Assembly: GCA_000708835.1 (NCBI GenBank)
Contig: DF237340.1
Span: forward strand, 1-64,000
DNA from: Klebsormidium nitens
Lineage: Eukaryota > Plantae > Klebsormidiophyceae
DNA: 64,000 nt
Direction: 5' to 3'
This document shows, one piece after another, positions 746 through 40,136 of this stretch. How positions within the stretch are numbered: position 1 is the stretch's first letter; each line of letters opens with the position of its first letter. Made by a program: the position numbers and the translations under genes. The notes beneath the pieces were generated by a model. That model was not told the origin of the DNA. It saw nothing but the letters and a program-made list of their open reading frames with translations, and did no database searches.

Positions 746-749
746 GGTC
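746..749. other. Left target-site duplication GGTC of element 1
   Basis: attagGGTC|TGCCGTG; identical 4-mer at 16746-16749. Confidence 0.85.
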
Positions 750-1450: not shown

Positions 1451-1452
1451 GC

Positions 1453-1580
1453 TGCCGTGCGCTACTCGGCTACTGCCGGTCCTCATGGGGTCCGGCGTTA
1501 CGCACCGTAGATTGGCTCAGACCCAAAGCTAGGACAGATTAAAAGTCCCCCTTCAGCTATTCCATACAAGCCGTTCCACT
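1453..1580 (-). repeat. Element 1 repeat B1 (128 bp), abutting the PPT
   Basis: Copy of 750-877, separated from A2 by a GC dinucleotide (1451-1452). Confidence 0.97.
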
Positions 1581-1592
1581 TCCCCCCCACTC
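1581..1592 (-). promoter_or_regulatory. Polypurine tract (plus-strand primer site) of element 1
   Basis: Sense GAGTGGGGGGGA, just after the INT-PHD stop and directly abutting B1. Confidence 0.8.
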
Positions 1593-1623
1593 GCTGGCCA
1601 CGGCCTCCGTGGCTTCCGGCGAG

Positions 1624-2148
1624 TTATCCTTGCTGCGCGCCTTCCGCGCAGCTGGGGCACAACCATACTCCGGCCGGTACTTCCTTGACCGCCAGCTCCA
1701 AACACCCCATGTGGTACCCGTCCATACAGTAGTCACACAACAGCATGGCTCCCTGTCGGTTTGGGCTCTTGCACACTTGACAGACATGGCCCGCCGTCAC
1801 CGTGGTTAGGGTGGGATCGACCGCGGTGTCGATGTTGGGGTTATGGCACGGCGCGCAGTTCTCCAGGTGCTCTTTGAACAGGGTTCCGTCTGCCCCCTGC
1901 AACACCAACCGCCCGTTGGCCCCCACTTGGTAGACTTTGTAAGCCCCCCGCGTCACCGCGACGTCCGTCTTGTCCAGAGGAGCTCGCCGGAGGTAGACCA
2001 AGTCCCCGACTTCAAACTTCGGCTGGAACCTCGTCTTCCGGACGTGTTCGTACCGTCGTTGGTCTCGTTTCTGCGCCGCCAACAGGTTCCCCAGGGCTAA
2101 GGGGATCTCCCGCCGGAGGACTTCCGCCCGCTGCTCGCACGCCGTCGC
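1624..2148 (-). pseudogene. pol: Integrase C-terminus (SH3-like region) plus PHD finger, element 1
   Basis: FQPKFEVGDLVYLRR...; PHD CQVC...LLCDYC..GYHMGCL....VPAGVWLCPSC. In frame with 2149..4230 but separated by a TAG at 2149-2151. Confidence 0.9.
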
Positions 2149-5398: not shown

Positions 5399-5418
5399 TT
5401 AGGGGCCCCCGCGTCCCT

Positions 5419-8400: not shown

Positions 8401-9069
8401 GCCCAGGCGCACGGCGTCCTTGATGACGTCATCGTCTGTGAGGCCGAGCTGGGCTACCCCGGGTTTGCCGACGAGGAGGGGCATGGCGCCGGTGTCGAGG
8501 ATGGCGACCCCACGCAGGGGCTTGCCGTTGATCAACACCTCGCTCCTCGTGTTGTGGAAGATGGGGGCGCGCACGCGCTCGCGCGCCCGGTTCCCGCGGT
8601 ACGCTGGTAGGTTGCGTACCTTCTCCACCAGTGTTGCCCGTGCCGCCGGCTCCAACAGCTCCAGGATGGGGTCGAGGTTGCAGGGGCACATGGCTGAGTA
8701 GGCTTCCACCGGCATGGCGATGCTTGCGCCGGTGCTGTGGACGGGCGCCGTGGGCTGAGGGGTGCCGGCGCTGCCATGTTGGGAGGCTGGGGCGTTCTGT
8801 GCAGGGGCTGCCCGGCCCGCCGGAGGAAGTTCCACACTTGGCCCGGACCCCCCTGAAGGGTGACCGGGCCCAGACCCCGGGTCGTCATCCTTGGGGTCCC
8901 GCTGGGGCTGAACTCCCGGGTGCTCGTCCGGCGGGGGAATCCCGTACTGCCTCTTCCTCAGTTCTTCCTCACCGGGTTCCGGGGAGGAGGGCGGGGTTTG
9001 GGCGCCAGGTGTGCGACGGATAGTCGCCTCCTGCAAGACGTCCTGGAATTTCTTGAGGTGTTCTGGCCC
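5419..9069 (-). CDS. Aspartic protease, unknown ~550-aa region and C5 cytosine DNA methyltransferase, element 1
   Basis: PR: AILDTGAMPLLVG (~8470-8520). DNMT ~5419-6490: I LLFGGIG, II YVEND, IV SSPCQGFS, VI FEMV, VIII HRVRTFW, IX ERERIMG, X RRLVGAAID. In frame with 9070..10932 across a TGA. Confidence 0.88.
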   Translation of the reverse strand, partial: GPEHLKKFQDVLQEATIRRTPGAQTPPSSPEPGEEELRKRQYGIPPPDEHPGVQPQRDPKDDDPGSGPGHPSGGSGPSVELPPAGRAAPAQNAPASQHGSAGTPQPTAPVHSTGASIAMPVEAYSAMCPCNLDPILELLEPAARATLVEKVRNLPAYRGNRARERVRAPIFHNTRSEVLINGKPLRGVAILDTGAMPLLVGKPGVAQLGLTDDDVIKDAVRLGLADDKVSAMFGVTREPLVFRFNPGTKTDTVLKVRAVITAAPYDFLVGNVVLWTLGGIVDAWREQFRYRLHWREGPQGAGNTEGFIPIRYERETGARHMPQVFYNSMLLRQGGVDRWRVYGPQRAPTPLESLPDLVSEDESGVVSSAGSIPDLNELPDFLEMASPDSSRSSTPDSLPDLEPVGQMELERLGDPAPVVAVEHEGWHGVYYRDDPDFRFVAPYPMDERWIWWLEYIATGQVGRSAVSRSNWDEERARLHRLATDLEDSLFGQWKLPEWHPEMVQRRRELAQIYTLILVYLAWLDFHNEEFAVMESVRSWEAQLHQALDWSVRERRALRLEDMVQVCPRAARLGLSGGEADSTARRLEQVMANGAAQRHNSVHVRNIVTCLRRQTRNDMQHSVDTPRYLLARPGLVVSREERRGFQPAFKRTLVSCHTHLSKLLAGIPDPAGPVDPQEVAHRELVHGVSPLWGSLEGYPPPALNYMRRQDEWGRPEPPPGWDYRLQTSHIYYRELYEFLAVHPRSLEEQFWMERNWERIGNFRNRDFPQMDDLLLMQNQRRREPPVVEVGEDEIAPVAEADPDALEDGVPPAADAPWDGLPQGLLTQPPVGQELSVIGSRTAYYRETVGLNSVPTFSPIFAEGLYITVMLLFGGIGAELKGLLRAGLYIKRLFYVENDPGARIAFGTRLRDLHHRYPEQLGPQAFHTTQSSMPWDIREVGERELRRAVGSECQDPINLVTISSPCQGFSRANRQALGLEDDRSGLIVEAWRILDTLQQIQRPWGFDVGFIFEMVDASDHPSPPARWGFEQLDAICGGQPGQGILIDAAKLGSAAHRVRTFWTNLAPGPLIQARYDEYDCGQAMNKVEARDVLEPFLTVQSALEDDPRVRGYFPMNVAGEPIRVFPTLVATPGSYAFRFQGPDRPGPGMRYDRNKREWDEPNANERERIMGLIPGSTAAPGLTEANRRRLVGAAIDVRAFYWLCKEIRRWRVLNYDED

Positions 9070-11587
9070 TCAGTTAATGGGTGCCACGGTTTTGCTATAC
9101 ACCTCCCGCCCAACCCGTATGGCAATTTCTTGGGCCACCTGTTCCCATGGCACCATCCGATTTTCGACATTGCAGGACCCGGCAGGCGCTGCGTCAAAGA
9201 CGGCTGAGCCTGAGGGGACCGCCAGAGGGACTTCTGGAGCGACGTCTGTCCCCGACGCTAAAGCCCCGCCCCCTCCTAGATCTTTTCCCCTGTCTCCCGG
9301 GCTGTCTCCCTTCCCGCCGGCTTCGTGGCCCTCGCCGTTACTGCCCGTCCGTTCCCCGGTAGGCTTCCCCGGGGCTAAGGGTGTTCCTTCTGGCGCCGGC
9401 GGTTTGGCGGGCGCTGGAGGCGGGGGTGGCGGCGGTGGCGGCGCCAGTGGAGAGGAACTGGGCCCCACATGGACCGTCTGCAGGCCCGGGTCCTCAACGT
9501 TGGCCATGAAGGCCTCCACGGCTGCGGGGTCAGCCGTCGGTCCGAAGCTGGGGACGGTGTGTCCGCTGCTCACTGCTCCGGCCGGCCCAAAACTCCGTTC
9601 AGAAAAAAAGAGAAGAATATGGGCGGCTTCCGTATCCGGGTGTTGAACGAAGTCAGGAAGCTCAGAGAAGACTCCCATATACGAGGAAGAGGGTGATCGC
9701 ACCTTCCCATTTTGTCCTTGTGCGGCCCCCTCTTCAAAGTCTTCAGGGGGGGTGGAGTAACCATGCTGGTCCTCCCCGCCCAGGAGTGCTGCCGCCTCCA
9801 ATGGCGCAACCGCCTTCGCGGCGGGCTTTCCCCCCGTCTTCCGTGTGGGGCGCTGTTTGCGCCCCTCACCCGCCGTGTCCGCTGGGCCTTTCCCTGAGCT
9901 AGCCGGGGGTGGGATTTCGGCAGGCGGGCTGGGGGCTCGTCCTCCGGCCGTCTGCGTTAGGCCCCCTTCCTCCGGCCCGGTTTCCGCCGGTGGGTTGGGC
10001 TCCTTGGTCCCTTCCGGCTGCTCCTCCTCGGACGGGCTCGGTTTACGTTCCGGTTCCCCCTCCGGCGGCCACGGGGCCCGCTCCACCCCTTCGTCCGGCT
10101 CTTCCCCCGGCACGTCGTTACTCACCGCTCCCCATCCTCCGAGGGCCATCGTGTCGTTCATGAGCTGCCCGTCGTACATGTCTTCCTTGTGCCCAATGGG
10201 AGGTCGCCATCCCAGGTAGTAGGTGTTGGCCTCCCGCCGGAGGAGCACTTGCAGCTGGCTCAGCTTCTGGGGGTGCGCGTTTCCGCTCCACTCCAGGCCT
10301 GCGACGCGCTCCAGGGCGATGTTGAGGGCGATCTGCTCACGGACCTGGGACTCCGAGGGAAACCTGTTCCCAGCGGGCGGAAGTCCATAGACGAACGGTC
10401 CCCCTTCCTTCCAGAACCATCGGGTTTGCGCCTCGTAAGAGGCGGGGTAGGGAACGGTGGAGAACTTGGGGTAGTCGGCCGCACGCGGCGCTCCGGCCTC
10501 GTCCAGCCACCGCTTCCAGACTGGGTCCTCCCCGACTGCTACTTCCTTCTCCGGCGGCACTGTCGGGCGCCCAGCTGCTGCTTCGGCGGCCGGGTCGAAG
10601 TCGTCACCTGCGTAGGAGTACCATGGCCGGCGGTGAGTGGCGCTGTTCTCCTCCGCAAAGCCCGCCCGCTTCGCATACGCGATCTCTACCACCCTCCCGC
10701 GCGCCCATATGGGGTCGATGAGGGATTCCCGGCGCTCAGGGGAGGCATGGGATAGGGCGAAAATGAGGAGGCCCCGGTACTCGTCCCGATAGTAGTCGGG
10801 GGACTGGTCCACCAGGGCAGGAAACTCCCGCCGGTCCGCCTCACGTTGGTAGAACGGATCCTCCGTGGTGGGCACCGTCTTGAAGACCTCGTCGAACCGC
10901 ACCACCCAGTCTTCCTTCTCCAGGCCCGCCACTCGCGCTTGTGCCGCCTGCAGGTCGGGGTCGTTGTGGTTGAAGGCTCCCGGAAGGGGTCCCCCGAGGT
11001 ATTCCCAGGGTTCTCCTTGGTTTCGGCTTCCGCCTCCGGCTCTCCTCCAGGACCCCCCGGCTCCGCAGTTTGCTGCTCCTCCGGCGCGTCTTCAGGGCGA
11101 ACCTCAGCTTCCCCTACTCCCGTGGCTTGCTGCCCCTTGGCCTCTTCTTTGCCTTCTTGGTTGGCGGGGCGTCCACCACCGCCGTGCCCTCCTTCTCGTG
11201 CTCTGTTTCCGCTTTTTCTCCCGCCGGAACAGGCCTCTTACCCCGCTTCTCCTTGACTGCTGACTTAGGCTCTGAAGGTTCCTCCGGCGGCGCCTTCTTC
11301 TTGCCCTTGTCCTGAGTGTCGGTTTTCTGCCCAGTGGCTGCAGGGAGTGGTTTCTCCGGGGGCTTGGGAACAACCTTCTTCTCCTCCGATTGCTTGCCAC
11401 CCTTCTGTGCCGAGGTGGATTTCTCCACCTTGACCTCCTGCAGGTTCACGGGCATTCCGGGGCTGATCCAGGGGTTGGGGTGGAAGGGCGGGACTTTGGA
11501 TTTAACCGATCCTGATCTTGCCCACCCCTCAGCTGTGAGCGCGGCTTGTGCGCTTTCAGCTGATCCCGGTGGGAAGATCCCCCGTGA
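9070..11587 (-). pseudogene. Unknown protein-coding cargo between gag and PR, element 1 (includes 620-aa ORF 9070..10932)
   Basis: Long open frames with GC-rich coding-like composition, in frame with the flanking ORFs across TGA stops. Probable frameshift(s) near 11000-11120. No domain recognised. Confidence 0.6.
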
Positions 11588-14500
11588 TCAAAGGAATTGC
11601 ATTTTAGGGCGCTTGGGGGGAGGGGTTGGGGTGCGGGTGCGTTCCCCCCCCTTTTCCTCGCTGGATGACGGCGTGGCTTCCTCGTCGTCCTCATCCGGCG
11701 TAAGGTACCCCCCCAACTTGGCCAGCCCGGCCTTGGCGTTAAGCTTTTTGCGCGCTGATTCGAGGCGGGCGTGCTCTTGGTTTGCCGTTTCAGGGCTCGC
11801 CTGCGCCAGTTTGAGCAACAGGTTATCGACGTTCTCCTCCAGCTCCCGCACCTCGATCCGAATCACTGATACGTCGAAAATCTCCACACCAGGCTCAAAG
11901 GTTAGGATGGGGCCCTCCTCCGGCGCCTTCCTCAGCCGGGCCTCCAGCTTCCTGGCCCGCCGGAGGACCTCCTTGCTCCCGTTGACACCCTCAATCGCCC
12001 CGGCTTGACGCAAAGAGCTGGCCAGCTTCCTGAGGCCGTCGATGCGCACCTGCTCGCCGGTGGGGTCGAGTCGAAGGGTGGGTGGAGGCTCCACACTGCG
12101 GGACCGCTGTCGCTGTTGGTGTCCTGTTGACAGCTCTCCGGCGCCCTCGTCCGCTGGGTCGTTCTTGGCCCGCCGTGGACGCTTGGTTTGGGGGCTGGCT
12201 GACCGGGCGCGCCGTTCTTCTCCGGCCACCTGTCGCTTCTCCCGCCCCGACCGCCGCGCCAGGATGGGCTTGTCCTCGCCCTCGCTGGCCTTACCGCCCA
12301 GGCCCTTCCGGCTTGCGGTTGGAGAAGGCTTGGAGGCACCGCCCCCTTTTGTCTCCTTGGGGCCCGGTTGCTTCGGCCGAGGGGGTGCGCCGATTGGCAC
12401 CACCCGTGGGAGATTTTCCCCTTTCACGTGGGTGGGGGCGGGGGACACGCGCTTGTCGGGCTCCGTGGAGTGCCCCCCCCACTGCCCGTGTGGCACGTCG
12501 TAGTCGTCGACCTTCCAAGTTTCCCGGTAGGTGGTGTCCTCCCGGTCGTCATCGTCGCGCACATACTTCTGGTACGCGTAGAGGGGGTCCGTCCCCCAGG
12601 CAGCGTACAGATTGGCCTTGTACTGTCCCCACGGGATGACGCGCCCCCTGTTGTGGGTGTCGCCCTTCTTCAGCTCAAGCTCCTCCTCCGGCAGGGGGCC
12701 CACCTGGATAGGCGTGTTGTCGTCCCAGCCACCGTGCCACGCGTGGAGGAGTCGCCGGTGGAACAGCACCATCTCAGACAGGTCCGGCTTGGGCGGGGCC
12801 TTCTTGGACGCTGGCCGCCCGTGCAGCTCGCGGCAGTACTCAAGGATGGACCGACCCGCATAGTGCAGGGCCAGCAGGACGTAGCATTGCGTCCTGGTGG
12901 GCCGCTTGGCGAACATGAACTCCGCTGCCCGCGTGACGTACTCCCGGCCCCAGTGGGTTATGTAGCCCGCGAACTCGTCGTTGTGCATGACGGCCCAGGA
13001 TTGTCGCTCCCGCCAGTCTCGTGGACTCCAGCACATGCACCTGAAATCCGGGTGCCAAGGAGGGTGACCGGTTTTGCCCCCTTGGAGGCCGGCCTTGCTC
13101 TCGTCCTGGGCTGCGTGCGCCAGCATGTAGTTCAGGTGCTGGATGAACGCCATCTGCCCCTTGTACCGCGGGGCCTGCATCGGGGGCAGGTAGATGTCCA
13201 GTTTGTGCGGGGGGAGATGCGGGTCGTCGTCCACCACCGGGTCGGGGTACTCCTCCATGGCCCAGGTGTGGTTGTCGGCGTGGGTGGGATCGGCTGCGGC
13301 CAACCACTGATCCTTGAACGGACCAGCGACGATGTTGAACCAGTTTTCGCCGAGGGTTATGACGTCGTCAAACTTGCTGATGACGGTCTCTCCTCCCTGT
13401 GCTCCGCCAGCTCCTCCGGCCGCACCGCCTGCTTCTTCCTCCGGCTCGTCCTCGCCTGACTGCTCCACTGACCCCGAGCCCGCCTGCTCGGACTCCTCCT
13501 CCACGCTCTCACGCTCCGAGTCATCCGCCTCCCCCTCCGCGTCTTCGTCTCCCTCCTCGACGCCGGGCTGCTCCACATCCTCGGGGTCATCTTCGTCCCC
13601 CTCGCCGTCGTCATCGTCAGCTCCGCCAACGCAGCGCATGGGCTTCGCAGGACCGAGGTAGGACAGGGGGATGGAGGACGCTTGGACCTCCAGACTGTAG
13701 GCCGGAGGAAGGGTCTCGAACGGGGCTGCCCGTTTAACCTGCACCTCCCGTTGGGGCCCGACCTTGGGGTCATTCAGCATGTGGACCTGCACCCCTGCGT
13801 TCTCGAGGGACTCGATCCCCTGATAGCGGGGGTCGTTGGGGGAATACTCCCCAAAGGAAGGGGGCAGCTTCTGGGCGACCAGGGGCGTTGGCTCAGGCTC
13901 GGCGGGGCCTTCGGCTTCCTCCGGCTCAGCTCTGGTCTCCCCCCCGGCCTCCTCAGCTGCTGCGACAGGGCGATCGCCATGTGGGCGGAAGGCTGGGGGT
14001 GGGCCGCCCTTCCGCAGACGATCCTCCTTGGCTCTGGCCGCCAGCCGGTCCTTCTCCCCGCGTGCCCGCGGTGCCGTGGTTGTCTCGCGCTGCGCCTTGG
14101 TTGACGCGCGCACCTCCGGCAGCTCGTGGTCTTCGTCCGCCAGGTAGACGCCCATGTAGGGGACGCCTGGCTGCTCGATGACGGCCGACCACGCCAGCTC
14201 AGGGTCGAACTCCTCCGTGGCTGGCGCGTTGTGCTCCACCGCATCGGCGGCGTAGGCATGCTTGGGGGCTCCGCGGTTGCTCCGGCCGCCCGCACCAGGT
14301 TTGCCCTTGCCGCTGTCGCCGGACCCGCGCCACTTCTCCGGCCGCTTCTCGGGAATCGCCTCCCAGCACTCGTGGGACTCGTGGGAGTCCCTACGCTTGC
14401 AGTGCTTGCAGACCGCCCCTGGCATCCGCGGCCCCTTTGCCTCCGGCTTCTTCTTGCACTCCGTGCGTGTGTGGCCGTACTCGCCACAGTTGAAGCAGTT

Positions 14501-15714
14501 GCCCTTGAACCCCGTTCCCAGTGCCGGAGGCTCCATGGCGGCTAAGGCTTGCTTGGGTTTTCCCCGGCCTCGCCGCTCTCTCTCTTTGGGACCGCGTTCT
14601 GCTCGGGGTTTGTTGGACTCTCTCTGAGAGCCCGGGGACTTGCTGGAGAGGCTCAGGTCCTGCAATTTGGAGGAGAGGGGTTTGCCGGTGGTTTTGTCGG
14701 CCCGCTCCAGCTCACGTGCATGAAGAGCGTCCTCCACCTGCCTGGCCTCTTGCTCCAACTTGTCTAGGGTACAATCGGCAACAGCCCACTTGAGAACATC
14801 GTTCTCTATCGCACGCCGCACCTCCCCCCTAAGCGCTTTCAACGCTTTCTCAGTCACCTCCCTGCCGATGGTGGGCTTACCGTTCTTCCGGCAGAGCTCC
14901 CGCAAGAGGTGAAACGTGGCGTGAGTGCTCCTCCCCGCCGTGTACTTGAAGTTGAGGTATTCGCCCAGCGTCTGAGCGGTGTTCTCCGGATAGGTGGTCT
15001 GCAGGAAAGCCCAGGTTTCGGTCATGAGCGTGGGGTCCCCCTTTGCTACCTTCCGTGGCCAGGAAGGCACTGGGCCTGGCGGCGCGTCCGTGTTCGCCTT
15101 CCACTGCTCATGCCACTTCTCTGCGAGAAGTTTCTCCTCTACCTTCCGGTTTTCAGCCTCCACTTCCTCCCGCGCCTTCGCATTCTCTTCCAGACGCGTA
15201 CGGAATTTATCCTGGAGAACGTGGTATGCGTCCCCCTCACAAAGATCACTGCAAACTTGTCTTCATCAGTGAGAGTGGCCGCCGTAGCACTGCGGCGAGA
15301 CCGGATAAGCTGCAGGCGATTCTCATAAGTGAGCCGGAGGTCTGTGACACTCTGGCCCCCTACACGCCCACTAAACTTTCCACCGAAGCTCCCTGTGGAG
15401 CTACCCCCTGTCTCCTCCATATCCCAGCTGTCTTCCCAGTCCTCAACTCCTAAGAAGGAGACTGCTACGGCCGGAAGCACAACAGTGTTGCCCTGCTCCT
15501 CTGCCGATTCCGACGCACTGGTGGAAAGAGGGGTTTCAGGGATGATCTCACCAGCTGGGTTTTCTTCAGGTGAACCTTGACCACCCTCGGATGTCTCCGC
15601 TGCCGCCGTGGACTGTCCCTCACCCTTCGCTCCCTGCCCAAACCTCCGAAGAAAGTAAGGCGGGTCCCCTTCAGCCCCGCTGCTTTCCGCTGGCTGATCA
15701 GAGGGAGGCTGCAT
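11588..15714 (-). pseudogene. gag: Gag with zinc knuckles plus long C-terminal extension, element 1
   Basis: ATG at 15714. Probable 1-bp loss in a G run near 15232 joins ORFs 15139..15720 and 11588..15163. Knuckles CFNCGEYGHTRTEC and CKHCKRRDSHESHEC. Confidence 0.82.
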
Positions 15715-16152
15715 AAGCAATCAAAGAGTTTGCAAAATGCCCCTTACACCCTTGGTTCCTTGTAGCCAAAGGTTAAAACCTTACTCCCACACTCAGAGAT
15801 GTGGTTTCAGCTGCTCCGGCGCCCGTATTACGCCAACTGCAGGAGCTCCCGAGGCCCCACCCACTGCTTACTCAAGCAATGCTGGCTACCCCTGAGCTGT
15901 GCTAGCTCAATCAACCACGTGGGCAGTCCGCCGGAGGACCGCAGACACTGGTTGGAGCTGAGGGTGGCTCACCGTTGTGGCTTGCCGCTCGGACCGAGAA
16001 CCCTTGATCCCCGTACTCCTTGCACCCCCACTTAGCTTGAGCACCCAAGCAAACTGCTTGCCGCTGCAAAGAGAAAAATGATCCTCCAGGTTTGGACCAA
16101 TCAAAGTTCCCCCTTGCTAACCTTGCGAGAAGCACCTAACAGCCACCACCCA

Positions 16153-16172
16153 TCATTCCTAAAGTTGCAAGT
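16153..16172 (-). promoter_or_regulatory. Primer-binding-site position, self-complementary to A repeat (not a recognisable tRNA PBS)
   Basis: Abuts A1. Perfect 20-bp reverse complement of 16439-16458 (also 1144-1163). Confidence 0.8.
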
Positions 16173-16745
16173 AGCAACCATGCACAGGTTCTACAGGACA
16201 TGATGGGCAAAGGGATAGCTGGTTTGGTACTCGCTTATAACCTCTCAAGCATTACACATGCCCGGTGATTCCTCATGCTCATGTTGCTTCGGCTCCAACA
16301 AAGCCACATGCTCCGGCTCGCTCATGCTATCCTCACCATGCAATTGGCCGACAGGATCGCCACGCTCGCACGCAATGCTGTTGAATCAGGCTCAGAGAGA
16401 AGGAAGCTCGGGCGCCATTTGCTTGAATCAAGAGAGAGACTTGCAACTTTAGGAATGACACATCCGGTCGCAAAGTTCGCACCTAGTGTCACTCTAACAG
16501 TACTGCACTAGCCTAGTCTCAGACCCTTGTACAGCCTAAGCCCTAGCTCTGGCTAGTCTCGTCATGGTTTGAACTCGGCCGATGGTGACATTTGGCGCGG
16601 TTCCTCCGGCAAGCCTAGCCTAGTGTACATCGAATATAGGATATACTCTAGGCTATAGCCTATGTCTGCCGGGCCTTCCTACGCTGCTCCGGCCGCGGGT
16701 GCGCGCGCGCCGCGTCCTCCGGCACGCCGCTGGTCCGGCATGGCA
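16173..16745 (-). repeat. Element 1 repeat A1 (573 bp, 5'-terminal)
   Basis: Direct repeat of 878-1450. No B sequence on either side. Confidence 0.97.
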
Positions 16746-16749
16746 GGTC
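16746..16749. other. Right target-site duplication GGTC of element 1
   Basis: CATGGCA|GGTCattg; matches 746-749. Confidence 0.85.
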
Positions 16750-17247
16750 ATTGCTTCTTTTCAGAAGATTGACTCAACCCGACGCGTAATTTGCTGCACA
16801 TACATGCTTACCACATCACCTCCAACTCTGGACTGCTGAGTGTTGTTGTGATCTTGTTCAAATTGTGACTTAACGCCTCGTAAATAGACCTTACGTCGCT
16901 GTTATAGTGTCCAGACCGCCAGGAAAACAGGGTTAGCAAACTGGTTAGATCTTAACCTCTGGGTTAGTGTTTCCTCTTGGGACACAAGCATCAGGTAGCT
17001 CTGTGTTTTCTGGTCATGCCTATATAGGATTTATGTCTAGCGGTCACCCGCACCGCTCGTAGCATAAGTTCTTCCGAGGGGGTCAAATCTGCTGTTACTG
17101 CTGATTTCCTGACACTAGATTCAGAATTGCCTTGTGTTCTGTAGCAGATTCTGAAGCAGTGTCAGACTGGATACCATAGGTTCAGGAGAGTCCTGCTTAA
17201 TGCTGTAAAACTCATCAAACTCTCTCTCTCCTCATTTCTTCTGGACT

Positions 17248-17277
17248 TGGAGTGTTGAGACATGGAGTGTTGAGACA
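17248..17277. repeat. 15-bp tandem duplication (TGGAGTGTTGAGACA x2)
   Basis: Exact adjacent copies. Confidence 0.9.
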
Positions 17278-18578
17278 GGTATCATACCCCCGGCGCAAGG
17301 CGTGTTTGACAGTCTGTAATTTCTTACTTGAGAGCGCACCTGCTTACGACTCGTGACTAACTCCCGTGGTGTTGCTATGTGATTTAGTTGTGCTAACTTC
17401 CCCCACACTTACAACTCTGTCACCATTGACGTTACCACGCCTGTACCGCCTGTGAAGTGCACCAAGACGGCGCTGGATTACCTAGACTACTTGACTACGT
17501 CGTCGCTAGAGGTAGGTCTTCCATCACAGTTTCTTATCTGAGTACTGTCTGCCCGAGTGTTGACTTTAGCTCAGTGACGTTGCCCCAGTTGCTGTCTGTG
17601 CACTGTGCACCTCCGCCAGTCAGTTGCTGCACCTCTGTCAGTTGTTGTGTTGTATCTTGCCAGCACGCCGTCAGTCGGTTTCGATCTCTGCCTACTTTGT
17701 GAGTGGCTGACCTTGGTATGTGACTCAAAGGTAAACGATCCTGAACCCGGTTCGTTTGACGCGGCCAGCAATATTAGTTGACGCATGTTAACCGCTAGTT
17801 CTCGACCGTTCATCTAGCTCGTAGTTTGCAGGGGAACGAGGCCTGTGGATGTCCTCTTAAATCGCAGCGAGTCTGTGTTCGGAGGGTGTCCCGTCTCAAT
17901 CCACCTTTGCTTGTGATAGGACAATAGCGATCTGCTCAGCTGCAGTCCGATTGTCATAGTCCAGAAAGTCGCACTCATACAGTGACGCTTTCTGCAGAGC
18001 TGTTGGAGCGTTTCGAGTAGTGATACCTTCTGGTGCCCCTTCCGGCGGCCAGTGGTCCGTGAGTTGGAGAGTCAGGGGCCCCACGGTCCTTAACTACGCT
18101 GGACAGCCAGACCCTCAGTCGGTGCTGCGCTACACAGGTAGGCCCTCCAAGCACGCTTTCCGACATAAGGTGCTCTTTGCGACCTTCGTAGTTATTCGAA
18201 AGTTGGCAGCGACCAACTCAGGAAGCTTCGAGTCTACCACCAGGTTCAACGAAGTTCCTTATTTTTGATTGGTGCTCTCTGAAGTGATCGATCATTGACA
18301 AGTGCTTCAGTAGCGACTTTGTCTTTACAGCTTGGGTTCAATTACAGCCCTGCTCAAAAAACCGGTAACGAGACCGTTTTCTTACCTGCGCGTGTCCCAG
18401 AGTCTGACACTCTGACGGGACTGACCCTTGCGCGCTGTTGACTTGCAGATTCTCTTGCTCACAACCGCGGAGACCGTGGTTTCCCGCACGGGGGGAGAAG
18501 GAATCTGACGTGGCGGCCCGTGGCCCCACTAGTTAATGTTGGTTTCGGGTAGTTAGCGAATTTGGCACCTTCTCGTTC

Positions 18579-19523
18579 ATGAGTTGGAGATACAATTTGC
18601 GTAGCGGTCCTGAGTTTCCACACCGCGACCCGAACGTCGGACTTGGCAGTGACACTGGCCTTGATAACATTGATTATAACCAAGGCAGTAGTTCGAGTCC
18701 GACCCCTCATTCGCCGCGCGAATTATTGCACGATTCCGGGCACTCTGATTTTGCACCGCAGCTTGTGCGTGCATCATACTTGCCGACAGGCGCGCCCGCC
18801 TTTGTCGAGCCGTTTGATATAGCCGAATTAGACACCATGTCGCTACTGAATGTACAGCATGGTACATGACTCTTTACGGGACTCCCGGACGGCCCAAGTA
18901 TCTTGCACTTGCGCCAGAATTATGCGACGCTCAAGACGGAGCTCAAGCTCAAGCCGAATTCTGAGCTTATCAACGATAATGACAGGTTCAACCTGCTCAT
19001 GAAGTTCTTAGCCGGGGGGGCACGCGATCAGGCCGCCCACCTCGAGCGTGAGATGCGCGAAGAACTGCGCACCCGGAATGCTGCTCAGGCCGACTTATAT
19101 CTGCGGAATAAGACGGCATATGAGAAGGCGAAGACCGATTATGACGCTCTGTCAGCCGAAGCTAAGGCAGCCGCGACCGAACCGGTCCGGCCGGAGCCGC
19201 ATGTGGACGCAGAGGTCTATGATCAGCCGGTCGAGAAGTTCTGGGCTATGATGGAAAAGCTTTATCCAGAGAAGTCAACGACTCGGATGGATGAGTTCCG
19301 CTATTTTGCGCGACGCTCCGAGGAGACTATCGCTAGCCTCGTACAGCGCATGCAGTCATTGAAGCATGCCCTCGACCGCCCAGAGGAGATGGCCGTATTC
19401 AAGCTCATAGGAGCTATGCCCCGCCACTTGGGCGAGGAAGTTACGCGCCAGTTGAACGCCACAGCCATGGAGCCTGAGGAATGGACCATTGAGCTCGTGG
19501 GCCGGGTTGCAATTAAGCCTTGA
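18579..19523 (+). pseudogene. gag: Gag capsid region, element 2
   Basis: ORFs 18579..18869 and 18903..19523 are in the same frame, split by a TGA. Helical gag-like sequence, frameshifted into the CCHC ORF near 19520. Confidence 0.7.
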
Positions 19524-21579
19524 CCGCGCCACGACTCAGGCCAGCCTGTGGACGACCAATATGCAGCCGAAGGCTGCGCAGCCGCGCCATGCAACCGCAC
19601 AGCCAGCGCCGACTGCAAGGCCGAATGGCCGCAGGCAGGAGGGCCCCCATGATCATGCACACCCCAAGCACGATCATCGGGCCATCATATGCCACAACTG
19701 CGGAGAGGCGGGTCACAAACGGCCCCAGTACACTAAGCCGCTTATGGTTCGGGGAGCTTCGGCTCGCACCGACGCCAGAGCAGGCTCTAAGGATCCGAAA
19801 GGGGTTCAGTGCTGGCACTGCCTACAGTACGGCCACATGGCCGCGCAGTGCACAGACAAGCAAGCCGAGGTCTCTCGACCTGGCGCCCCCAAGATGTGGT
19901 GCGATATCCACAAGCTGGATTCGCATACCACTGCTGATTGCCGAGCCGCCCCGCGCGCCAAGAGCGCCAGGCCGGCCGCTGCCCGGGCTGCTCAGGCACC
20001 CGCTAAGGACGATCGGGGTTTGCCCGAACCTACCCTGGCACAGCTCAAGGAGCTTTGGGAGGCTCATCACAACCCAAATGCCTACAAGGCCACGATTGTT
20101 CCTGCACTTGGCGCCCATGTAGCACCGGTGCACTCACGACTTACCAAGAGAATTGTGGACAAGGATGAGAGGCTCAGAGGGCCGTTGGACAATATGCAGC
20201 TCAACTTCATCCCAAGGGACTTCCTGCGCGAGCCGCACAGGCCGCCGCCTGGAATGATGACGGTACCTGAGGGTATGGTGCCTGTCCTCGAAGCCGAGCC
20301 GGATGCGCGCACTGCGCCAGAGCCTGTTCACCCTGAGCTGGTACCAGTTGAGATTGCTCCTGGTCCGACCAACGACCAGGCTGTGCTGCCGTCCCTTGAG
20401 ACGCCGCCGCCTGCGCCTAATACTGTCACTGATGACACACTGCCCGCCAGCTTCACTGAGCTGCCGGCAGATGCACCCGCGCGCCAGGGCATGGTGTACG
20501 CACCAAGTGTGCCACAGCCCGCGCTGACACCTGAGCAGGAGACTGCGCCGACGCGCCGAGGCAAGCCTCGGGCCGCGCTTGCTACCTCTCAGGACTTGTA
20601 CAATCCAGAGAACCCGAACATTAGTGCGCTGCTCAGCCACTTGCCAGGAAGCTATCACAGCGACCAAACGGCCGGGTTCCACCGCTCGCCGCGCATTGAC
20701 AACTCAGGGCTGAAGCCTGCGATGCTGATCAATGGGCGCGCGCTGAACAACTTGCTGCTGGACAGCGGAGCCGAGGCCGCAGGTCGCTCGGGCGCTGCCG
20801 CTATGGGTATCACACCCGACGTGATCGCTCCGAATGCTATCATGATCCGCACCGCTACCGGTAACTTGACCGAGCGGTTGGATCGAACGAAGGAGCCAGT
20901 CAGCTTTGTGCTGAACCCTAGTACCGCCGACGAAGTCACTGTCACGGCGCATGTGGTTATTGTAAACCAGCAGGCCGCCGACACACTGATCGGTATGAGT
21001 ATCATTGGACCCGTGGGTCTTGATCCCAGCTTCAGGAAGAAGCGCGTCAAATACTACCTTGAAGGAGATGGACAAGCGCCCCGCAAGTGCTTCTTGCGCG
21101 CCAAGTTTCCAGTCGATTACGATTCTCCCTTCGCCAATCCAGGCGGCCAGGTGCTTCAAGCCCTCGTCGGCACTGTGATATCTCGGATTCCGAGCCCGCG
21201 CAATGCGCAAGACATTGAGTTCGCTCGCAGCCGCATCGCAACCTTTCAGGCAAAGGCTCTGCCAAAGATCACTGATATCTTTGACCGAAGCATGCGCGTG
21301 CTAGCCACTCCAGACAGGGCCCCTCCTAAGATTCGGAACCCTGCATACCAGCACCTGCGGCCCCTGAGCCAAAACCTGGTTGACCTGAAAGACAAGCTGG
21401 CCACACCTGGACCAGGCTTGGTGGTCTTGGAGCTGTTCTCCGGCCTCATGGCCACAACCGAAGCGCTGTGGCGCCAAGGGATTACCGTTCGCAAAGTCTA
21501 TGCATGCGAACTGGACGCGAAGACCAGAAAGATCGCCATGAGGCGACTGGCCGTCCTGCATACGCTTTATCCTCAGCTG
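19489..21579 (+). pseudogene. Gag zinc knuckles, aspartic protease and DNMT N-terminus, element 2
   Basis: CHNCGEAGHKRPQY, CWHCLQYGHMAAQC, CDIHKLDSHTTADC; PR LLLDSGAE; DNMT motif I VLELFSGL, motif II VYACELD. Confidence 0.85.
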
Positions 21580-22459
21580 NNNNNNNNNNNNNNNNNNNNN
21601 NNNNNNNNNNNNNNNNNNNNNNNNNNNNNNNNNNNNNNNNNNNNNNNNNNNNNNNNNNNNNNNNNNNNNNNNNNNNNNNNNNNNNNNNNNNNNNNNNNNN
21701 NNNNNNNNNNNNNNNNNNNNNNNNNNNNNNNNNNNNNNNNNNNNNNNNNNNNNNNNNNNNNNNNNNNNNNNNNNNNNNNNNNNNNNNNNNNNNNNNNNNN
21801 NNNNNNNNNNNNNNNNNNNNNNNNNNNNNNNNNNNNNNNNNNNNNNNNNNNNNNNNNNNNNNNNNNNNNNNNNNNNNNNNNNNNNNNNNNNNNNNNNNNN
21901 NNNNNNNNNNNNNNNNNNNNNNNNNNNNNNNNNNNNNNNNNNNNNNNNNNNNNNNNNNNNNNNNNNNNNNNNNNNNNNNNNNNNNNNNNNNNNNNNNNNN
22001 NNNNNNNNNNNNNNNNNNNNNNNNNNNNNNNNNNNNNNNNNNNNNNNNNNNNNNNNNNNNNNNNNNNNNNNNNNNNNNNNNNNNNNNNNNNNNNNNNNNN
22101 NNNNNNNNNNNNNNNNNNNNNNNNNNNNNNNNNNNNNNNNNNNNNNNNNNNNNNNNNNNNNNNNNNNNNNNNNNNNNNNNNNNNNNNNNNNNNNNNNNNN
22201 NNNNNNNNNNNNNNNNNNNNNNNNNNNNNNNNNNNNNNNNNNNNNNNNNNNNNNNNNNNNNNNNNNNNNNNNNNNNNNNNNNNNNNNNNNNNNNNNNNNN
22301 NNNNNNNNNNNNNNNNNNNNNNNNNNNNNNNNNNNNNNNNNNNNNNNNNNNNNNNNNNNNNNNNNNNNNNNNNNNNNNNNNNNNNNNNNNNNNNNNNNNN
22401 NNNNNNNNNNNNNNNNNNNNNNNNNNNNNNNNNNNNNNNNNNNNNNNNNNNNNNNNNNN
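21580..22459. other. Assembly gap (880 N)
   Basis: Run of N. Confidence 1.
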
Positions 22460-22669
22460 ATGATCCAGAAAGCTGATGGCTCTTGGGATGAACCCACCGC
22501 TCTGGAACGCGAGCGCGCTATGGGCTTCATGGACGGGACCACTCACGTCTGTCCCTCCATCTCTGAGGCGGATCGGCGACGGATCCTGGGAAGCACGATG
22601 GACATGCACAGCCTCCACTTTCTGGTTGGCAGCATCCACTGCTTCCAGGCAGCCTTTTTCACCGATTGA
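22460..22669 (+). pseudogene. DNMT C-terminus (motifs IX-X), element 2
   Basis: WDEPTALERERAMGF...EADRRRILGSTMD aligns with element 1 WDEPNANERERIMGL...EANRRRLVGAAID. Confidence 0.88.
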
Positions 22670-22950: not shown

Positions 22951-24207
22951 ATGCCGTCTGAGTCAGCCCTGAAAGAGGGGCATCAGGACGAAGATGGGAA
23001 GAAAGCTAGCCGCTTGAACGGCAAGCCTCTGCATGATCCTCTGGAGAAAGCTACCGAGAAGCAGCCCCAGAGTGAGAATAGGCACACCGCGCAGGAGAAT
23101 GCACCCAAAGTGGAGCCCCTGAACGCGCCTCTGGAGAAAGCTTCTGAGTCGAAGCCCCAAGGGAAGCCTCCGGAGAAAGTTCCAAAAAACGGATTCCCTC
23201 CGGCCCAGAACGGCGAGCCATCGCCTGTTGTGGCAGACCCCGATGATGAAACACCGCCTCTCGTCGATGATGAGGACGAGTTCGAACCGGATGATGAACC
23301 GCCGCCCCTCGTCGCTGAGGAGGACGCGTTCGAAACCGAGTGGGACATGGGGGATCACCTTACTCCTTACCAGAAGCGCGAGCTTCAGAATCTTTTGGAC
23401 GAATTCCATGACGTGTTTGCACGCAGCATGTCAGAGATGACGACCGTCCGGGGGGAGAAGTTCTCAATCCCGGTCACTAACGATACGCCGATCTTCCGGC
23501 ATCAGTATCGGTTGTCACAATCGGAGAAGGAGAGTCTGAATGAGCACATTGAGGAACGCATCAAGTGCGGATTCATTCGACCGTCCTCGTCCCCATGGGC
23601 CTTTCCCACAACCATGCCTCCTAAGAAGGATGAGCACGGTAACTGGACGCTTAAACGGCCATGCGGAGACTATCGCGAGCTGAACAAAGTCAGCGTCACG
23701 GATCACTACCCGTTGCCCACGCCTGAAGAGATCTTTGATCAACTCCAGAGCGCCACGTGGTTTACCACGTTGGACCTTCGTTGGGGCTATCACCAGGTCG
23801 CTATCGATGAGAAGGACTATTGCAAGACAGCTTTCTGGGGACCTCGGGGACTCTATGAACGGGTCGTGATGCCGTTCGGCCTGAAGAACGCCCCGGCCTT
23901 CTTTCAGCGCATGCTGGATACCACCTTGCGGGCTCAGTTCGAGTTCTGCCGCTGCTACATTGATGACCTGATCATCTTCAGCAAGTCGTTCGACGAGCAC
24001 TTGGTGCACTTGCGAGCGGTCTTTGAGCAGCTGCACCGCAAACGGATTCGGTGTCATCCGCCGAAGAAGATGAGGCTAGCCGTGTCAGATGTCGAGTACC
24101 TGGGCCACTTCGTGGTACCCAACGGTACCGCACCGCAGCAGGCGAAGGTTGAGGCCATCGTCAAGATGCAGGCACCACATGACATGCCCACGCTGCGCGC
24201 CTCTTAG
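22951..24207 (+). pseudogene. pol: Reverse transcriptase, element 2
   Basis: RPCGDYRELN, DHYPLP, FTTLDLRWGYHQV, MPFGLKNAPAFFQRM, CYIDDL. Frameshift near 24200. Confidence 0.93.
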
Positions 24208-24233
24208 GCACTGCCGGCTATTATCGGCGCTAT

Positions 24234-25601
24234 GTGCGGAATTACTCCCGCATCGCTGAGTCTCTAAACCGCCTCCTTCAGAAGGACGTGCCATGGGAAT
24301 GGTCAGCTCAGGCTCAAGAAGCCTTCGAGCAGTTGAAGGTCAAACTGACCGAGGCGCCTATCCTCAGGCGGCCCAACTATGACCTGCCCTTTGAGCTGCA
24401 CACTGATTGGAGCAGCGCCGGCCTGGGCGCCGTGCTCGCTCAGAGAGACGAGGAAGGCAAGGAGTACGTGGTCGCGTACGCCTCTCGTAGCAACAATCGG
24501 ACTGAGCGCAACTACTCCAGCTATCATGGAGAGTGTCTCGCCGCTGTCTGGGGAGTCCAGATCTTCCGCTGGTACCCCTATGGCCGACACTTCACGCTGA
24601 TCACGGATCACGAGCCTCTGAAGTGGCTGATGACGAACATGAGGCTCACAGGAATGCACGCCCGCTGGGCTAACATCCTTCAGGAGTACGAGTTCGAGAT
24701 CGTTCACCGCAGTGGTCTCAAGAATCTTGACGCGGACGGGCTCTCACGCAACCCGCTCCCCTCAGATCATGACCCGACCGATGCTCGGATGGATCACACT
24801 CCTAGTGACGTCTCTCACATCTCGGCCTGCTTGGCTCGCCTGGCTGTCGGATCCGATAACACTCCGTCACCCATGCCGGCCCTCATTCCAACTGCTCCTG
24901 AGCGCGAACCGCCTGAGGTTGATATGCCAGTCAAGCTTGACCGCGACATATGGCATGATGCCCCCGTGATCGAGTTCCTGCGGGACGGTACCTACCCACC
25001 TGATGCTTCGAGCCAGGTTCGGGACCGCATCTGGCACCGAGCCCAGGGCTATCACTTCGAGCACGACCTGCTGCGCAGGCGTGTTGACGGCGGTGGGTCA
25101 AAGATTGTGCTCAAGCCCGACCAGCGCGCGAACCTGATTCGCCGAGTCCACATGGACATCGGACACTTTGGTGTCAAGAAGACCTACTCACTGCTCGAGC
25201 CCACATACTGGTGGGTCGGCATGTACGGCCAGGTCGAAGTTGAGGTCAGCTTCTGTGTCGTCTGTGACCGTGTCAAGGCCACCTTCGAGGTGAAGGATCC
25301 CACGCTGAAACCGCTGCCAATCATGGGCATGTTCTACCGTTGGGGCATTGACTTGTTCAAGATGCCAGTCAAATCGACTGCCGGCAACGAGTACGTGGTT
25401 GTGATGATCGAACACTTCAGCAAGTGGATCGAGATCTTTGCCATACCAGCCAAGAAGGCTGAGTACGTTCGCGAGAAATTCATTGAGGTCCTGGCCCGCT
25501 TCGGCGCGCCAGTAGAGGTCGTTACTGACCAAGGCTCAGAGTTCGAAGGCTTGTTTGCCGAGCTCCTGATTGCCCTGTACATCGACCACTGCATCTCGTG
25601 A
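24234..25601 (+). pseudogene. pol: RNase H and integrase N-terminus/core, element 2
   Basis: ELHTDWSS, GECLAAVW, ITDHEPL; HMDIGHFG..CVVC; WGIDLFK, VTDQGSEF. Confidence 0.93.
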
Positions 25602-26403
25602 CCACGCGCAGTCCAACGGCCTGTCTGAACGGATCGTTCAGATGATGAAGAAGGCGTTGCGAAAATACTGCGTGCTGTACAACCGCACCCAGTGGGATGC
25701 ATTCCTACCTTGGATCATGATGGGTTACCGACTCAGCCGACACACGTCGCTAGGGGGATACTCGCCGTACTACCTGCTGTACAGGCGCCACCCCGTTGTG
25801 GGCATGCGCATCCGGGACATTGTGAGCGAGCCCATCGACCTCGACTCACCCGTGACAAGCGCCAGGATCCTGAGGGACCGCGCTGAGTTGTTCAAGACGG
25901 CCATGCCTATGGCGTTTGACAACCTGCTGATTGCCCAACACCGTGACACCGAGCGTTATGCCGTTGTCCGGTCTGGCGACTTCAAACCGAAGATGAAACG
26001 CTTCGAGGAAGGGGACTATGTCTACCTCCGGCAACAATCCAAGGACACCATGGAACTGGCCAAGGGCCGTATAATCCTGCGTGTGAAGCAGCTGCTCGGC
26101 ACTGGCCGCCTGCTCCCGGAAGGCCGCAGTGATGGCAAGACTATCAAAGATCATGTTGAGAATTGTGCGCCCTGCCACAATCCGAACATCGATCCATGGC
26201 AAAACCCAGCTTTCGCTGAGGACAAGGACCAAGCCTGCGAGGTTTGCCACGATACGGCTGCGAACCGACGCACCGGGCCCATGCTTCTGTGCGAACACTG
26301 CGATTCGGGCTGGCACATGAAGTGCCTGACACCGCCCATCAAGAAGCGGCCCAAGGGCGATTGGTTCTGCCCGCGGTGTCCTCTCAACCGCCCTCAGATC
26401 TGA
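25570..26403 (+). pseudogene. pol: Integrase C-terminus plus PHD finger, element 2
   Basis: QSNGLSERI (catalytic E); FKPKMKRFEEGDYVYL; PHD CEVC...LLCEHC..GWHMKCL.PP....PKGDWFCPRC. Confidence 0.92.
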
Positions 26404-26466: not shown

Positions 26467-26480
26467 AGTAGGGGGGAGGG
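26467..26480 (+). promoter_or_regulatory. Polypurine tract of element 2
   Basis: AGTAGGGGGGAGGG, downstream of the PHD stop and abutting B1. Confidence 0.8.
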
Positions 26481-26609
26481 ATCATAGATGATGTGTATGA
26501 TGCATATGAGTGACATGAGATGCCATGTATTTTTCTTTCAGCCGAGTGCGCCGAGACTTGTCGGGTATGTTATCGACATGTTACCGCAACGACCCAGGAC
26601 CGCGTGACA
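26478..26609 (+). repeat. Element 2 repeat B1 (~132 bp; start +/-3)
   Basis: Direct repeat of 27174-27306 with a few mismatches and one indel; ends GTGACA followed by GC-TGTCATGC. Confidence 0.95.
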
Positions 26610-26611
26610 GC

Positions 26612-27173
26612 TGTCATGCCGTGATCTATCGTTGTTGTAAGGGCTCGGCCCTAAGCTAGTTTTATTCCCCGCGCCTAGTTCATGCCTGCCGCTCTAGGGT
26701 GATCCCTCTGAGCCTGAGCTTCAGCACGTGGCATATCTGCTGAAGGCGTGCGCTTGATATTTGCGCGCGGCCGTTACGATTATATTTCAACCGTATGACC
26801 ACATATTTCGGCGGTTGATAACCGCGTCCAGCCACGGCGGTTATGGCGACATCGACTCCATGCGACTTGTAGACTTCCTAGGCTAGCTGTAGACTCAGAC
26901 TACCAGTTTAGACTTCGCGCGATACCACTAGACCGTAGTGACTCGACTTCGACTCTAGACTCGACTCAGATATTCCGACGACAGCGAGTATAACCTAGGA
27001 ACATTCGACTCATTCGCCAACTTTGTGCGAGTTGTGTTTTGGAGACATCAGCGCTCCCTTGTGACGATCAAGGCCGGTCGCCCTTGCATCCTCTCACCTG
27101 CATGACTTAGCACCTTCAAGCGCTTTGACGCTTCCTCCCGCTACGTTTGCCTGCTGTTTGCCACCCCCTGTGT
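26612..27173 (+). repeat. Element 2 putative repeat A2 (~562 bp)
   Basis: Lies between B1-GC and B2, starts with TG, and is similar in length to element 1 A (573 bp). Its A1 partner is not in the window. Confidence 0.7.
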
Positions 27174-27306
27174 GGGATCATAGATGATGTGTATGATGCA
27201 TATGAGTGACATGAGATGCCATGTATTTTTCTTTTAGCCGAGCCTCGCCGAGACTTGTCGGGTATGTTATCGACATGTTACCGCAACGACCCAGGACCGC
27301 GTGACA
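27174..27306 (+). repeat. Element 2 repeat B2, 3' terminus ending in CA
   Basis: Copy of 26478-26609. Homology stops exactly after CA; flank is CGTG. Confidence 0.95.
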
Positions 27307-28661
27307 CGTGCTTAACACCGGCTGGCAAACATGCAAAATGACTGCGTCTCGGACACTAATTTGCGTTCATGCAATAGGCACTGCAGCTAGGTTGAGTACT
27401 ATATACTAGGTAAGATACACGTGGTTACGTTCAATACGGGAAGGTCATATGCGCCGCGGCGGGGCAGCCGCGACGAGCAAAGAATTCAAGCCTGCTGCGG
27501 CAAGCACTGCATGAGTTCCTCACACACTGACATGAGCAGTGATGTCATTCGGAGCTGCATGATACATATATTCAACCCTCCCATAACTCAGCGTATCATT
27601 CCGAAGTTCTTCAAGTTCTAGAGGTTAGACACCGTATTTCTTGAACTTCGGCTATAACCCAAGGACTCCGCCGCCGCTGTTTATTGAAAACTTACCACTA
27701 AGTCGAAGCAAGTAAATCTATGAAGCTATCTTCAAACATCGATCTTGCCATCTATTTAAGTTGCTCTTGGCAAACCTTAGTACGTTCCGTGCGAACTTGG
27801 CGAACACGCGTAATACTGCATATAATTGCTAAATTTGCACGCATACTATGATAAGTGCGTCATGGGATCGGACGGCCACCAGTCGATTGCATAAAAAACG
27901 TCATATTCGTCTTCAATTGAGTCCCATTGAACTTCAAGTTCATGCACGCTCGAGATATTGATTTACGGTACCGTACTCAACGCTTCCATAGATCACTATT
28001 GCGCGCATGAGCGCCTATGGCCTATTTGGCTACGGCGCGGCGACTATGAAAAGAGACCATCGCCCCGCTAACTCATCAATAGTCTATATGTATGGGTGAC
28101 TAGCCCGATAAGATATTGTGTAGAATAATTTGTATACTAAGAGGCTGCATGTTGGCACGTAACATGCTGCATGCCTGGACGGTTGAAATAGTTGCGGCCC
28201 CCGGCAGGATCGATCAACACGGTTACTCCCAGAATTGAAATCCGTACGTTTTGATTGATCGAGCGCGGCCGCGCACGTGACTCGCGGACCCAGACGGCCG
28301 GCCCGCACATGCATGCAAGCCCGACGGCGAGAACTTTGTTGCGCACGCGGCTCATTATATGCTCATATGCGAGCAACACTGCTAAATCAATAGCTTTTGC
28401 AAGACTCACTTAGGCTAGAATGAAATGCATGCGATCTTAAGTTAAGTTAGTGACTGAACTCCGTGCCTGCGCTGCAAATCGATTTTGGCTATGCATCGAT
28501 TGCACCCTCAAGCATCATCTCTTACGTGCCGCGTATCAGTGTACCAGGTAACCACAGGTTGGCCCAACCACTGCCCTAAAATTCAAGTAACTGAGTTTCG
28601 CATTCCAAGCCGAGCTTTCCTCTCTACTATGGTCACAACTACCTCTCATCCCTCAAAAACT

Positions 28662-40136
<11,475 letters not shown>

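Follow-up and report, generated by a model that had tools for sequence, protein, structure and literature searches.

The window analysed here comprises bases 1–64,000 of scaffold DF237340.1 of Klebsormidium nitens (64,000 nt; the assembly holds no sequence upstream of it) and carries two Gypsy retrotransposons, one nested in the other, whose terminal repeats are split. A repeat segment, A, stands alone at the 5′ end of such an element, and a composite B-GC-A-B stands at its 3′ end; two complete and identical long terminal repeats (LTRs) are not found. We consider it fairly probable (about 0.6) that these elements are permuted proviruses, made by way of an end-joined cDNA in which the integrase cuts at an internal palindrome.

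The 3′ end of element 2, the outer of the two, shows the layout clearly (Table 1). Between 26,467 and 27,310, the polypurine tract (PPT) is followed by B1, GC, A2 and B2 in the order originally noted, with a B1 of 132 bp, an A2 of 562 bp that starts with TG and a B2 that ends with CA. Comparison of the repeats by blastn and direct-repeat search shows that B1 and B2 are 97% identical over 133 bp (E = 3e-57) at a spacing of 696/697 bp, which is a match far above chance. Element 1, the nested one, has the same arrangement with a B-to-B spacing of 703 bp. Its A copies are 98.3% and its B copies 99.2% identical, and identities of 98–99% indicate that these repeats are young.

The order PPT–B1–junction–A2–B2 is also present in three other K. 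nitens loci (L001, a sister copy of element 2 that is 88% identical to it, L002 and L003), in JGI metagenome contigs (L006, L009 and, on L012, the elements L012-alpha and L012-beta) and in the liverwort Calypogeia fissa (L013; chromosome-scale assembly GCA_965154635.1). Together with one ENA contig (L011, from ERZ23872192), the sources of the layout are thus K. nitens, two JGI samples, the ENA contig and Calypogeia fissa. Its occurrence in independent assemblies and distinct families supports the suggestion, initially made from the two window elements, that the mechanism is lineage-wide and that neither a single rearrangement nor an assembly error accounts for the layout. A pattern scan of a metagenome contig collection for the A start of the JGI families gave no match, and the JGI samples are evidently absent from that collection. 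The two spacings of 696 and 703 bp agree with those first given, but their near-identity, which had been taken for a shared property, is a coincidence, as B-to-B spacings in other families are 353, 440, 546, 647, 662, 685, 705 and 878 bp.

The A and B segments of element 1 give no cross-match with those of element 2 at E <= 1. The likeness of the two elements is confined to the junction, where B ends in CA, GC follows and A starts with a sequence of the form TGYCATGCC, in agreement with the initial description of their sequences as unrelated everywhere else. The two are not unrelated lineages; both belong to the DNA methyltransferase (DNMT)-carrying Gypsy group of K. nitens. The CA-GC-TG junction is found in eight elements (elements 1 and 2, L002, L003, L009, L011, L012-beta and L013) and is thus kept between families that have no other alignable sequence in A or B; older or decayed copies have GG, GT or GGC in place of GC.

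Complete elements are available in three cases (element 1, L012-beta and L013), and all three have A alone at the 5′ end, TG…CA termini and perfect 4-bp target-site duplications (TSDs), namely GGTC, GTAA and GTCA, respectively. In element 1, the duplication is corroborated by a paralogous insertion-free site in L001, which has the GGTC tetranucleotide once. TG…CA termini and 4-bp TSDs are hallmarks of DDE integrases. The A-only 5′ end, the 4-bp TSD and the self-complementary primer-binding site (PBS) anticipated for element 2 are accordingly seen in these three relatives. The liverwort element (L013 3,782–13,708; 9.9 kb) has repeats that are 99.4–100% identical and encodes a DNMT, reverse transcriptase, RNase H, integrase and a PHD finger. 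Its DNMT domain scores above the Pfam cut-off in the gag-side open reading frame (ORF) and its integrase ORF is intact; DNMT-carrying Gypsy elements are therefore not confined to Klebsormidium. Three ORFs of this element share one reading frame with two in-frame stops between them, and these stops might be read-through sites rather than damage. L012-beta (7,769–10,932, minus strand) is a 3.2-kb non-autonomous derivative, with a gag that contains a zinc knuckle only, yet it keeps the full split-repeat ends and the TSD. Its leader holds a tandem array of ~105–115-bp repeats (9,876–10,258).

Two further loci depart from the integrated layout. L011 (1–11,053) is a SPAdes contig with a 55-bp terminal overlap in which a single B-GC-A unit separates PHD from gag; its topology is that expected of a 1-LTR circle and, just as much, of a multi-copy repeat collapsed into one. 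In L007 (10,798–10,960), PPT, B, CA and GC are followed by unrelated sequence with a long ORF, and A2 and B2 are absent, perhaps through recombination between B1 and B2, through a deletion or because the copy was inserted as A-internal-B.

The relation of A and B to a canonical LTR is revealed by the primer sites. In all loci examined, B starts at the base after a G-rich PPT. A1 ends at a PBS that does not start with TGG, and hence is not a site for a tRNA 3′ end, and that is complementary to a motif inside A. The complementarity extends over 20 nt in element 1 (perfectly, to 16,439–16,458 in A1), 14 nt in element 2, 14 nt in L011, 12 nt in L013 and 11 of 12 nt in L012-beta; in predicted folds of the stretch from motif to PBS, the two pair with each other. 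This complementarity shows a putative self-priming arrangement of the Tf1 type. A TATA-like box lies ~30 nt upstream of the primer motif in element 2, L011/L003 and L012-alpha, and a weaker one in L013; element 1 and L012-beta show none. From this position of the TATA box, the primer motif is presumably the 5′ end of the RNA, that is, the start of R inside A.

Since the PPT adjoins B1 and the PBS adjoins A1, B-GC-A corresponds to the canonical LTR (U3-R-U5). With R starting at the presumed RNA 5′ end, U3 would consist of B, GC and the first part of A, and R-U5 of the rest of A. The anatomy shows that at the A2/B2 boundary the last base of U5 is joined to the first base of U3, as in a 2-LTR circle or a head-to-tail concatemer. 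Indeed, the bases that meet at A2/B2 are the one preceding the PBS and the one following the PPT in element 1, in L013 and in L003 taken together with L011. The latter two represent one family in which both boundaries can be read: L011 gives A followed by PBS, and L003 gives A2 followed by B2 and PPT followed by B1. The integrated copy is thus a canonical provirus circularly permuted by the length of B. Its termini, TG of A and CA of B, are flanked by the 4-bp TSDs and meet head to head inside the element as the CA-GC-TG palindrome. The A2/B2 junction of element 2 is ~19 nt short at the U5 end. The sister copy L001 retains these bases, the last 8 nt of which match the tail that precedes the PBS of element 2.

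The 5′ end of element 2 is cut off in the window. Positions 161–749 and 16,750–17,351 are collinear with a single uninterrupted stretch of L001; this continuity places element 1 within the leader of element 2 and identifies 146–160 as the PBS of element 2. Fourteen nucleotides of this site (146–159) are perfectly complementary to 27,019–27,032 within A2, and, as it does not begin with TGG, it is not of the tRNA 3′-end type. The two leader pieces combined have about the length of the L011 leader (2.7 kb). A second copy of the element 2 A segment was not found in the window by blastn (word size 7) or pattern search. Its A1 is interrupted by a foreign repeat, here called X, and by the start of the scaffold, so that the 5′ end that had been predicted, CGTG followed by TGTCATGCC, cannot be read. 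Among the relatives of element 2, the contigs of L001, L002, L006, L009 and L012-alpha stop short of the 5′ end, the L003 copy is truncated, and a second L001 copy loses homology before the PBS.

The terminus of repeat X (~45–60 nt) is found with different flanks in L004 (twice, inverted), L005, L008 (twice) and L009. In L008, the repeat measures ~590 bp and has TG…CA termini and short inverted ends; its CA terminus adjoins or lies inside Gypsy elements in six places. X may represent a solo LTR or, in another split-repeat family, a solo A-B unit, although it may also be of a different nature. The 590-bp direct repeat pair of L008 (75% identical), which lies around a relative, resembles ordinary LTRs, but its terminus is that of multi-copy repeat X and the flanks differ everywhere. 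L004 and L005 have no B repeats, and their segment is bounded by two inverted X termini.

The coding regions assign both elements to the integrase-bearing Gypsy elements. Pfam domains occur in the order zf-CCHC, RVT_1, RT_RNaseH, Integrase_H2C2 and rve in elements 1 and 2, L011 and L013, and no tyrosine recombinase domain is detected by Pfam in any large ORF of these four. Element 2, whose integrase is of the DDE kind, is a Ty3/gypsy-type LTR retrotransposon of the DNMT/PHD-carrying Klebsormidium group. Its gag-side ORF is 55–63% identical to P0122 (1,278 aa, with a C5 DNA methyltransferase domain) and aligns with it as far as the start of the DNMT domain, the remainder falling in an 880-N gap. 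Relative to intact relatives, element 2 has three frame changes in total (one in gag-DNMT and two in pol), and no stops occur in the aligned stretches of its ORFs, pol having been compared with the intact L011 and L013 ORFs. Element 1 matches CCHC, RVT_1, RT_RNaseH, Integrase_H2C2 and rve, with a PHD finger in the deposited gene model and a weak DNA_methylase match (PF00145, 19 bits, under the 22-bit cut-off) in a region that aligns to the DNMT-bearing ORF of L013; against relatives, its pol has a single frame change and a single in-frame stop. The best protein matches come from Klebsormidium nitens, one protein being 99% identical, and the scaffold DF237340.1 (L010) agrees with the window at 100% identity over the same coordinates; further relatives occur in Closterium, Riccia and Tetraselmis. 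Element 1 also has two large ORFs (620 and 1,191 aa) whose Pfam match is limited to a zinc knuckle.

In the textbook account, LTR retrotransposons and retroviruses integrate a linear cDNA bounded by the LTR ends, and circles are considered to lead no further. The route that we favour for the split-repeat elements would differ from this scheme after reverse transcription, which would yield an ordinary cDNA with B-GC-A at each end. The U5 end of such a cDNA would then be joined to a U3 start, for which host end joining and a template jump by the reverse transcriptase are both possible. By analogy with retroviral integrases, the integrase may make two cuts with CA-3′OH ends at one internal CA-GC-TG palindrome; GC being self-complementary, each cut would leave the usual 2-nt 5′ overhang. 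The resulting A-internal-B-GC-A-B molecule would be inserted with a 4-bp duplication. This permutation alone keeps R at both ends of the transcript and would therefore be the only source of further copies. The junction of element 2, ~19 nt short while the bases are kept in L001, fits a junction that is remade in each cycle and sometimes imprecisely.

Several considerations weigh against this end-joining route. No circle or concatemer was observed among the loci compared, and the circular-looking L011 could just as well be a repeat that collapsed during assembly. As the two palindromes of a 2-LTR circle are equivalent, a random choice between them would be expected to give the permutation A-B-GC-A-internal-B about as often, but the 3′ ends that carry B-A-B all share one permutation and the sole deviant, L007, is not assignable. 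Hence the model lacks a directional step or too few copies have been sampled; the argument from R at both ends accounts for the survival of lineages but does not explain why dead copies are missing. That the integrase would cleave at an internal site is proposed by analogy only. Finally, both window copies are broken and therefore uninformative on present activity.

Of the other explanations, the one that survives best, although we judge it unlikely, arrives at the same permuted product without a ligated circle. The U5/U3 junction would be made by the reverse transcriptase, the growing plus strand switching, at the U5 end, to the U3 start of its own or another cDNA, and the integrase would act on an over-long linear cDNA by using the palindromes nearest its ends. 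Such a jump could account for the single permutation seen, and it agrees with junctions that are mostly base-precise. In several families, 1–3 nt are common to the A end and the PPT end, which fits a jump guided by microhomology, but B may just as well begin with these bases. The ~19 nt missing at the element 2 junction look more like nibbling of an end before joining, and unrestrained read-around would give concatemers with further palindromes.

A cycle of the DIRS/PAT/Ngaro type, in which a trans-acting tyrosine recombinase inserts a circular cDNA and the layout owes nothing to the integrase gene, is very improbable. It would explain the repeat order A1-internal-B1-A2-B2, which is that of split-direct-repeat DIRS elements (PMC8969392, PMC5890265). 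However, the large ORFs of elements 1 and 2, L011 and L013 contain no tyrosine recombinase domain, the young copy L013 has kept an intact integrase ORF, and the perfect 4-bp TSDs and TG…CA termini contrast with DIRS elements, which are described as lacking TSDs (PMC8969392). Least probable of all is an ordinary element whose LTR is A alone, with B a 3′ untranslated piece duplicated beyond the 3′ LTR by local rearrangement or assembly artefact: LTR-finding software would indeed call A1/A2 the LTR pair and the K. nitens assembly is a gapped short-read scaffold, but the layout recurs in independent assemblies (the chromosome-scale liverwort included) and in families with unrelated A and B, the TSD flanks the A1 start and the B2 end rather than the A2 end, B starts exactly at the PPT and hence is the U3 start, and neither of the two N runs of the scaffold (21,580–22,459, 880 N, and 61,343–61,917) lies in or near the repeats.

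Elements 1 and 2 belong to a kind that has been published. De Mendoza et al. (2018; PMC5890265) described KnitGypsy-Dnmt3 of Klebsormidium nitens, for which the legend of their Fig. 4c gives a DIRS repeat structure with Gypsy domains, and regarded the gain of the DNMT as confined to the K. nitens lineage; the paper does not report termini, TSDs, a junction palindrome, the type of PBS or a mechanism. Organism, Gypsy pol with a DNMT in the polyprotein (a putative one in elements 1 and 2), and DIRS-like repeats with Gypsy domains are the same here. Element 1 is a member by every feature that can be tested, its DNMT match being weak, and element 2 has relatives that carry the DNMT, its own copy lying partly in the assembly gap. 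The difference is that the same element type, DNMT included, is found here also in a liverwort. In the literature that could be searched, split repeats combined with an integrase were found only in the 2018 figure legend (PMC5890265). What is new is therefore the fine anatomy, the mechanistic reading and the DNMT-bearing split-repeat element of the liverwort, which extends DNMT-carrying Gypsy elements from Klebsormidium to a land plant.

Comparison with other systems shows partial similarities. Split-direct-repeat DIRS elements (PAT, Ngaro, TOC1/TOC3 and SymbioDIRS) share the order A1-internal-B1-A2-B2 and imply a circular or end-joined intermediate, but they possess a tyrosine recombinase and no TSD, whereas Klebsormidium-type elements have a DDE integrase, TG…CA ends and 4-bp TSDs; the present elements are therefore not DIRS members. 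Tf1/sushi and Tcn1 elements are self-priming, with a PBS complementary to the start of their own transcript rather than to a tRNA (PMC6317226); the transcript start of the elements described here is a predicted one. The Tf1/sushi and Tcn1 elements have two complete LTRs and a chromodomain, in contrast to split repeats and an integrase with a PHD finger. A precedent for the proposed cleavage is retroviral. The DDE integrases of foamy virus and HIV-1 are reported (PMC1180852, PMC1905944) to cleave the palindromic LTR-LTR junction of 2-LTR circles, an internal CA…TG palindrome of closed DNA, and thereby to regenerate integration-competent ends, as the integrase of the split-repeat elements may do. 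The retroviral palindrome is the U5/U3 junction itself, where CA and TG are 4 bp apart, and its cleavage appears as at most a side path. In the elements described here, by contrast, the palindrome lies inside U3, 2 bp separate CA and TG, and the U5/U3 junction is retained in every integrated copy.

The combination of integrase hallmarks (TG…CA termini and a 4-bp TSD) with a repeat layout that had until now been associated with tyrosine-recombinase elements has several implications. If the end-joining route is correct, these elements offer a natural system for studying integrase action on internal sites, it becomes clear why standard LTR finders mis-annotate them (A1/A2 are read as LTRs and the TSD is not found), and the result bears on the origin of DIRS-like elements. 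If the end-joined route were also obligate, they would be a natural case of the old circle-junction integration model. More tentatively, and with odds that we place below even, an integrase-bearing Ty3/gypsy lineage extending from streptophyte algae to liverworts may pass obligately through an end-joined cDNA, either circular or concatemeric, its DDE integrase cutting an internal palindromic attachment site, and could be ancestral to the split-repeat layout of DIRS, PAT and Ngaro.

Table 1. Coordinates of the two nested split-repeat elements and of repeat X (window positions unless a locus is named).
Feature	Position	Strand	Remarks
Element 1, whole	750–16,745 (15,996 bp)	−	Complete split-repeat Gypsy element nested in the element 2 leader
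Element 1 B2	750–877		Plus-strand coordinates, as for all element 1 parts
Element 1 A2	878–1,450
Element 1 GC	1,451–1,452
Element 1 B1	1,453–1,580
Element 1 PPT	1,581–1,590
Element 1 internal region	1,591–16,152
Element 1 PBS	16,153–16,172
Element 1 A1	16,173–16,745
Element 1 TSD GGTC	left 746–749; right 16,746–16,749	.
3′ end of repeat X (unrelated, LTR-like)	1–137	+	Ends CA; interrupts the element 2 5′ end and runs off the scaffold start
Putative last 8 nt of element 2 A1 (U5 end)	138–145	+	Equals the last 8 nt of A2 in L001, directly before L001 B2; thin evidence
Element 2 PBS-like site, putative self-priming type	146–160	+	Homologous in position and sequence to the L011 PBS
Element 2 leader, first piece	161–749	+	Collinear with L001 6,801–6,275 (81%)
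Element 2 leader, second piece	16,750–18,812	+	16,789–17,351 matches L001 6,236–5,699; short matches to the 2.7-kb L011 leader
Element 2 gag-CCHC/DNMT gene	18,813–22,666	+	Pfam zf-CCHC; one frame change; contains the 880-N gap 21,580–22,459
Element 2 pol	22,951–26,403	+	Reverse transcriptase, RNase H, integrase (H2C2 + rve), C-terminal PHD finger; two frame changes
Element 2 PPT (plus-strand primer)	26,467–26,477	+	G6 core; a G6–8 tract and a conserved box just 5′ adjoin B1 in every family examined
Element 2 B1	26,478–26,609 (132 bp)	+	First part of canonical U3; ends CA
Element 2 GC dinucleotide	26,610–26,611	.	Centre of the CA-GC-TG palindrome
Element 2 A2	26,612–27,173 (562 bp)	+	Rest of U3 plus R-U5; starts TG
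Element 2 A2, TATA-like box	26,989–26,993	+
Element 2 A2, primer motif	27,018–27,032	+
Element 2 B2	27,174–27,306 (133 bp)	+	Terminal B copy; ends CA at the element 3′ end
Element 2 CGTG flank	27,307–27,310	.	Presumed right half of a 4-bp TSD, by analogy with three complete relatives
Repeat X, all sites	window 1–137; L004 68–112, 5,415–5,458; L005 81–125, 5,428–5,471; L008 4,596–5,187, 13,117–13,708; L009 77–129

The transposon-rich first 27 kb contrasts with the remainder of the window (28,000–64,000), in which no ORF of at least 200 aa is found and A steadily exceeds T on the plus strand (AT skew 0.05–0.20). A 995-aa ORF at 19,489–22,476 and several ORFs that overlap it are artefacts, the N of the gap at 21,580–22,459 having been read as X. 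The deposited annotation places a phosphatidylinositol 3-/4-kinase gene model (PI3K_C2, PI3Ka and PI3_PI4_kinase) on the minus strand at 28,662–32,669, ~1.4 kb downstream of the end of element 2.

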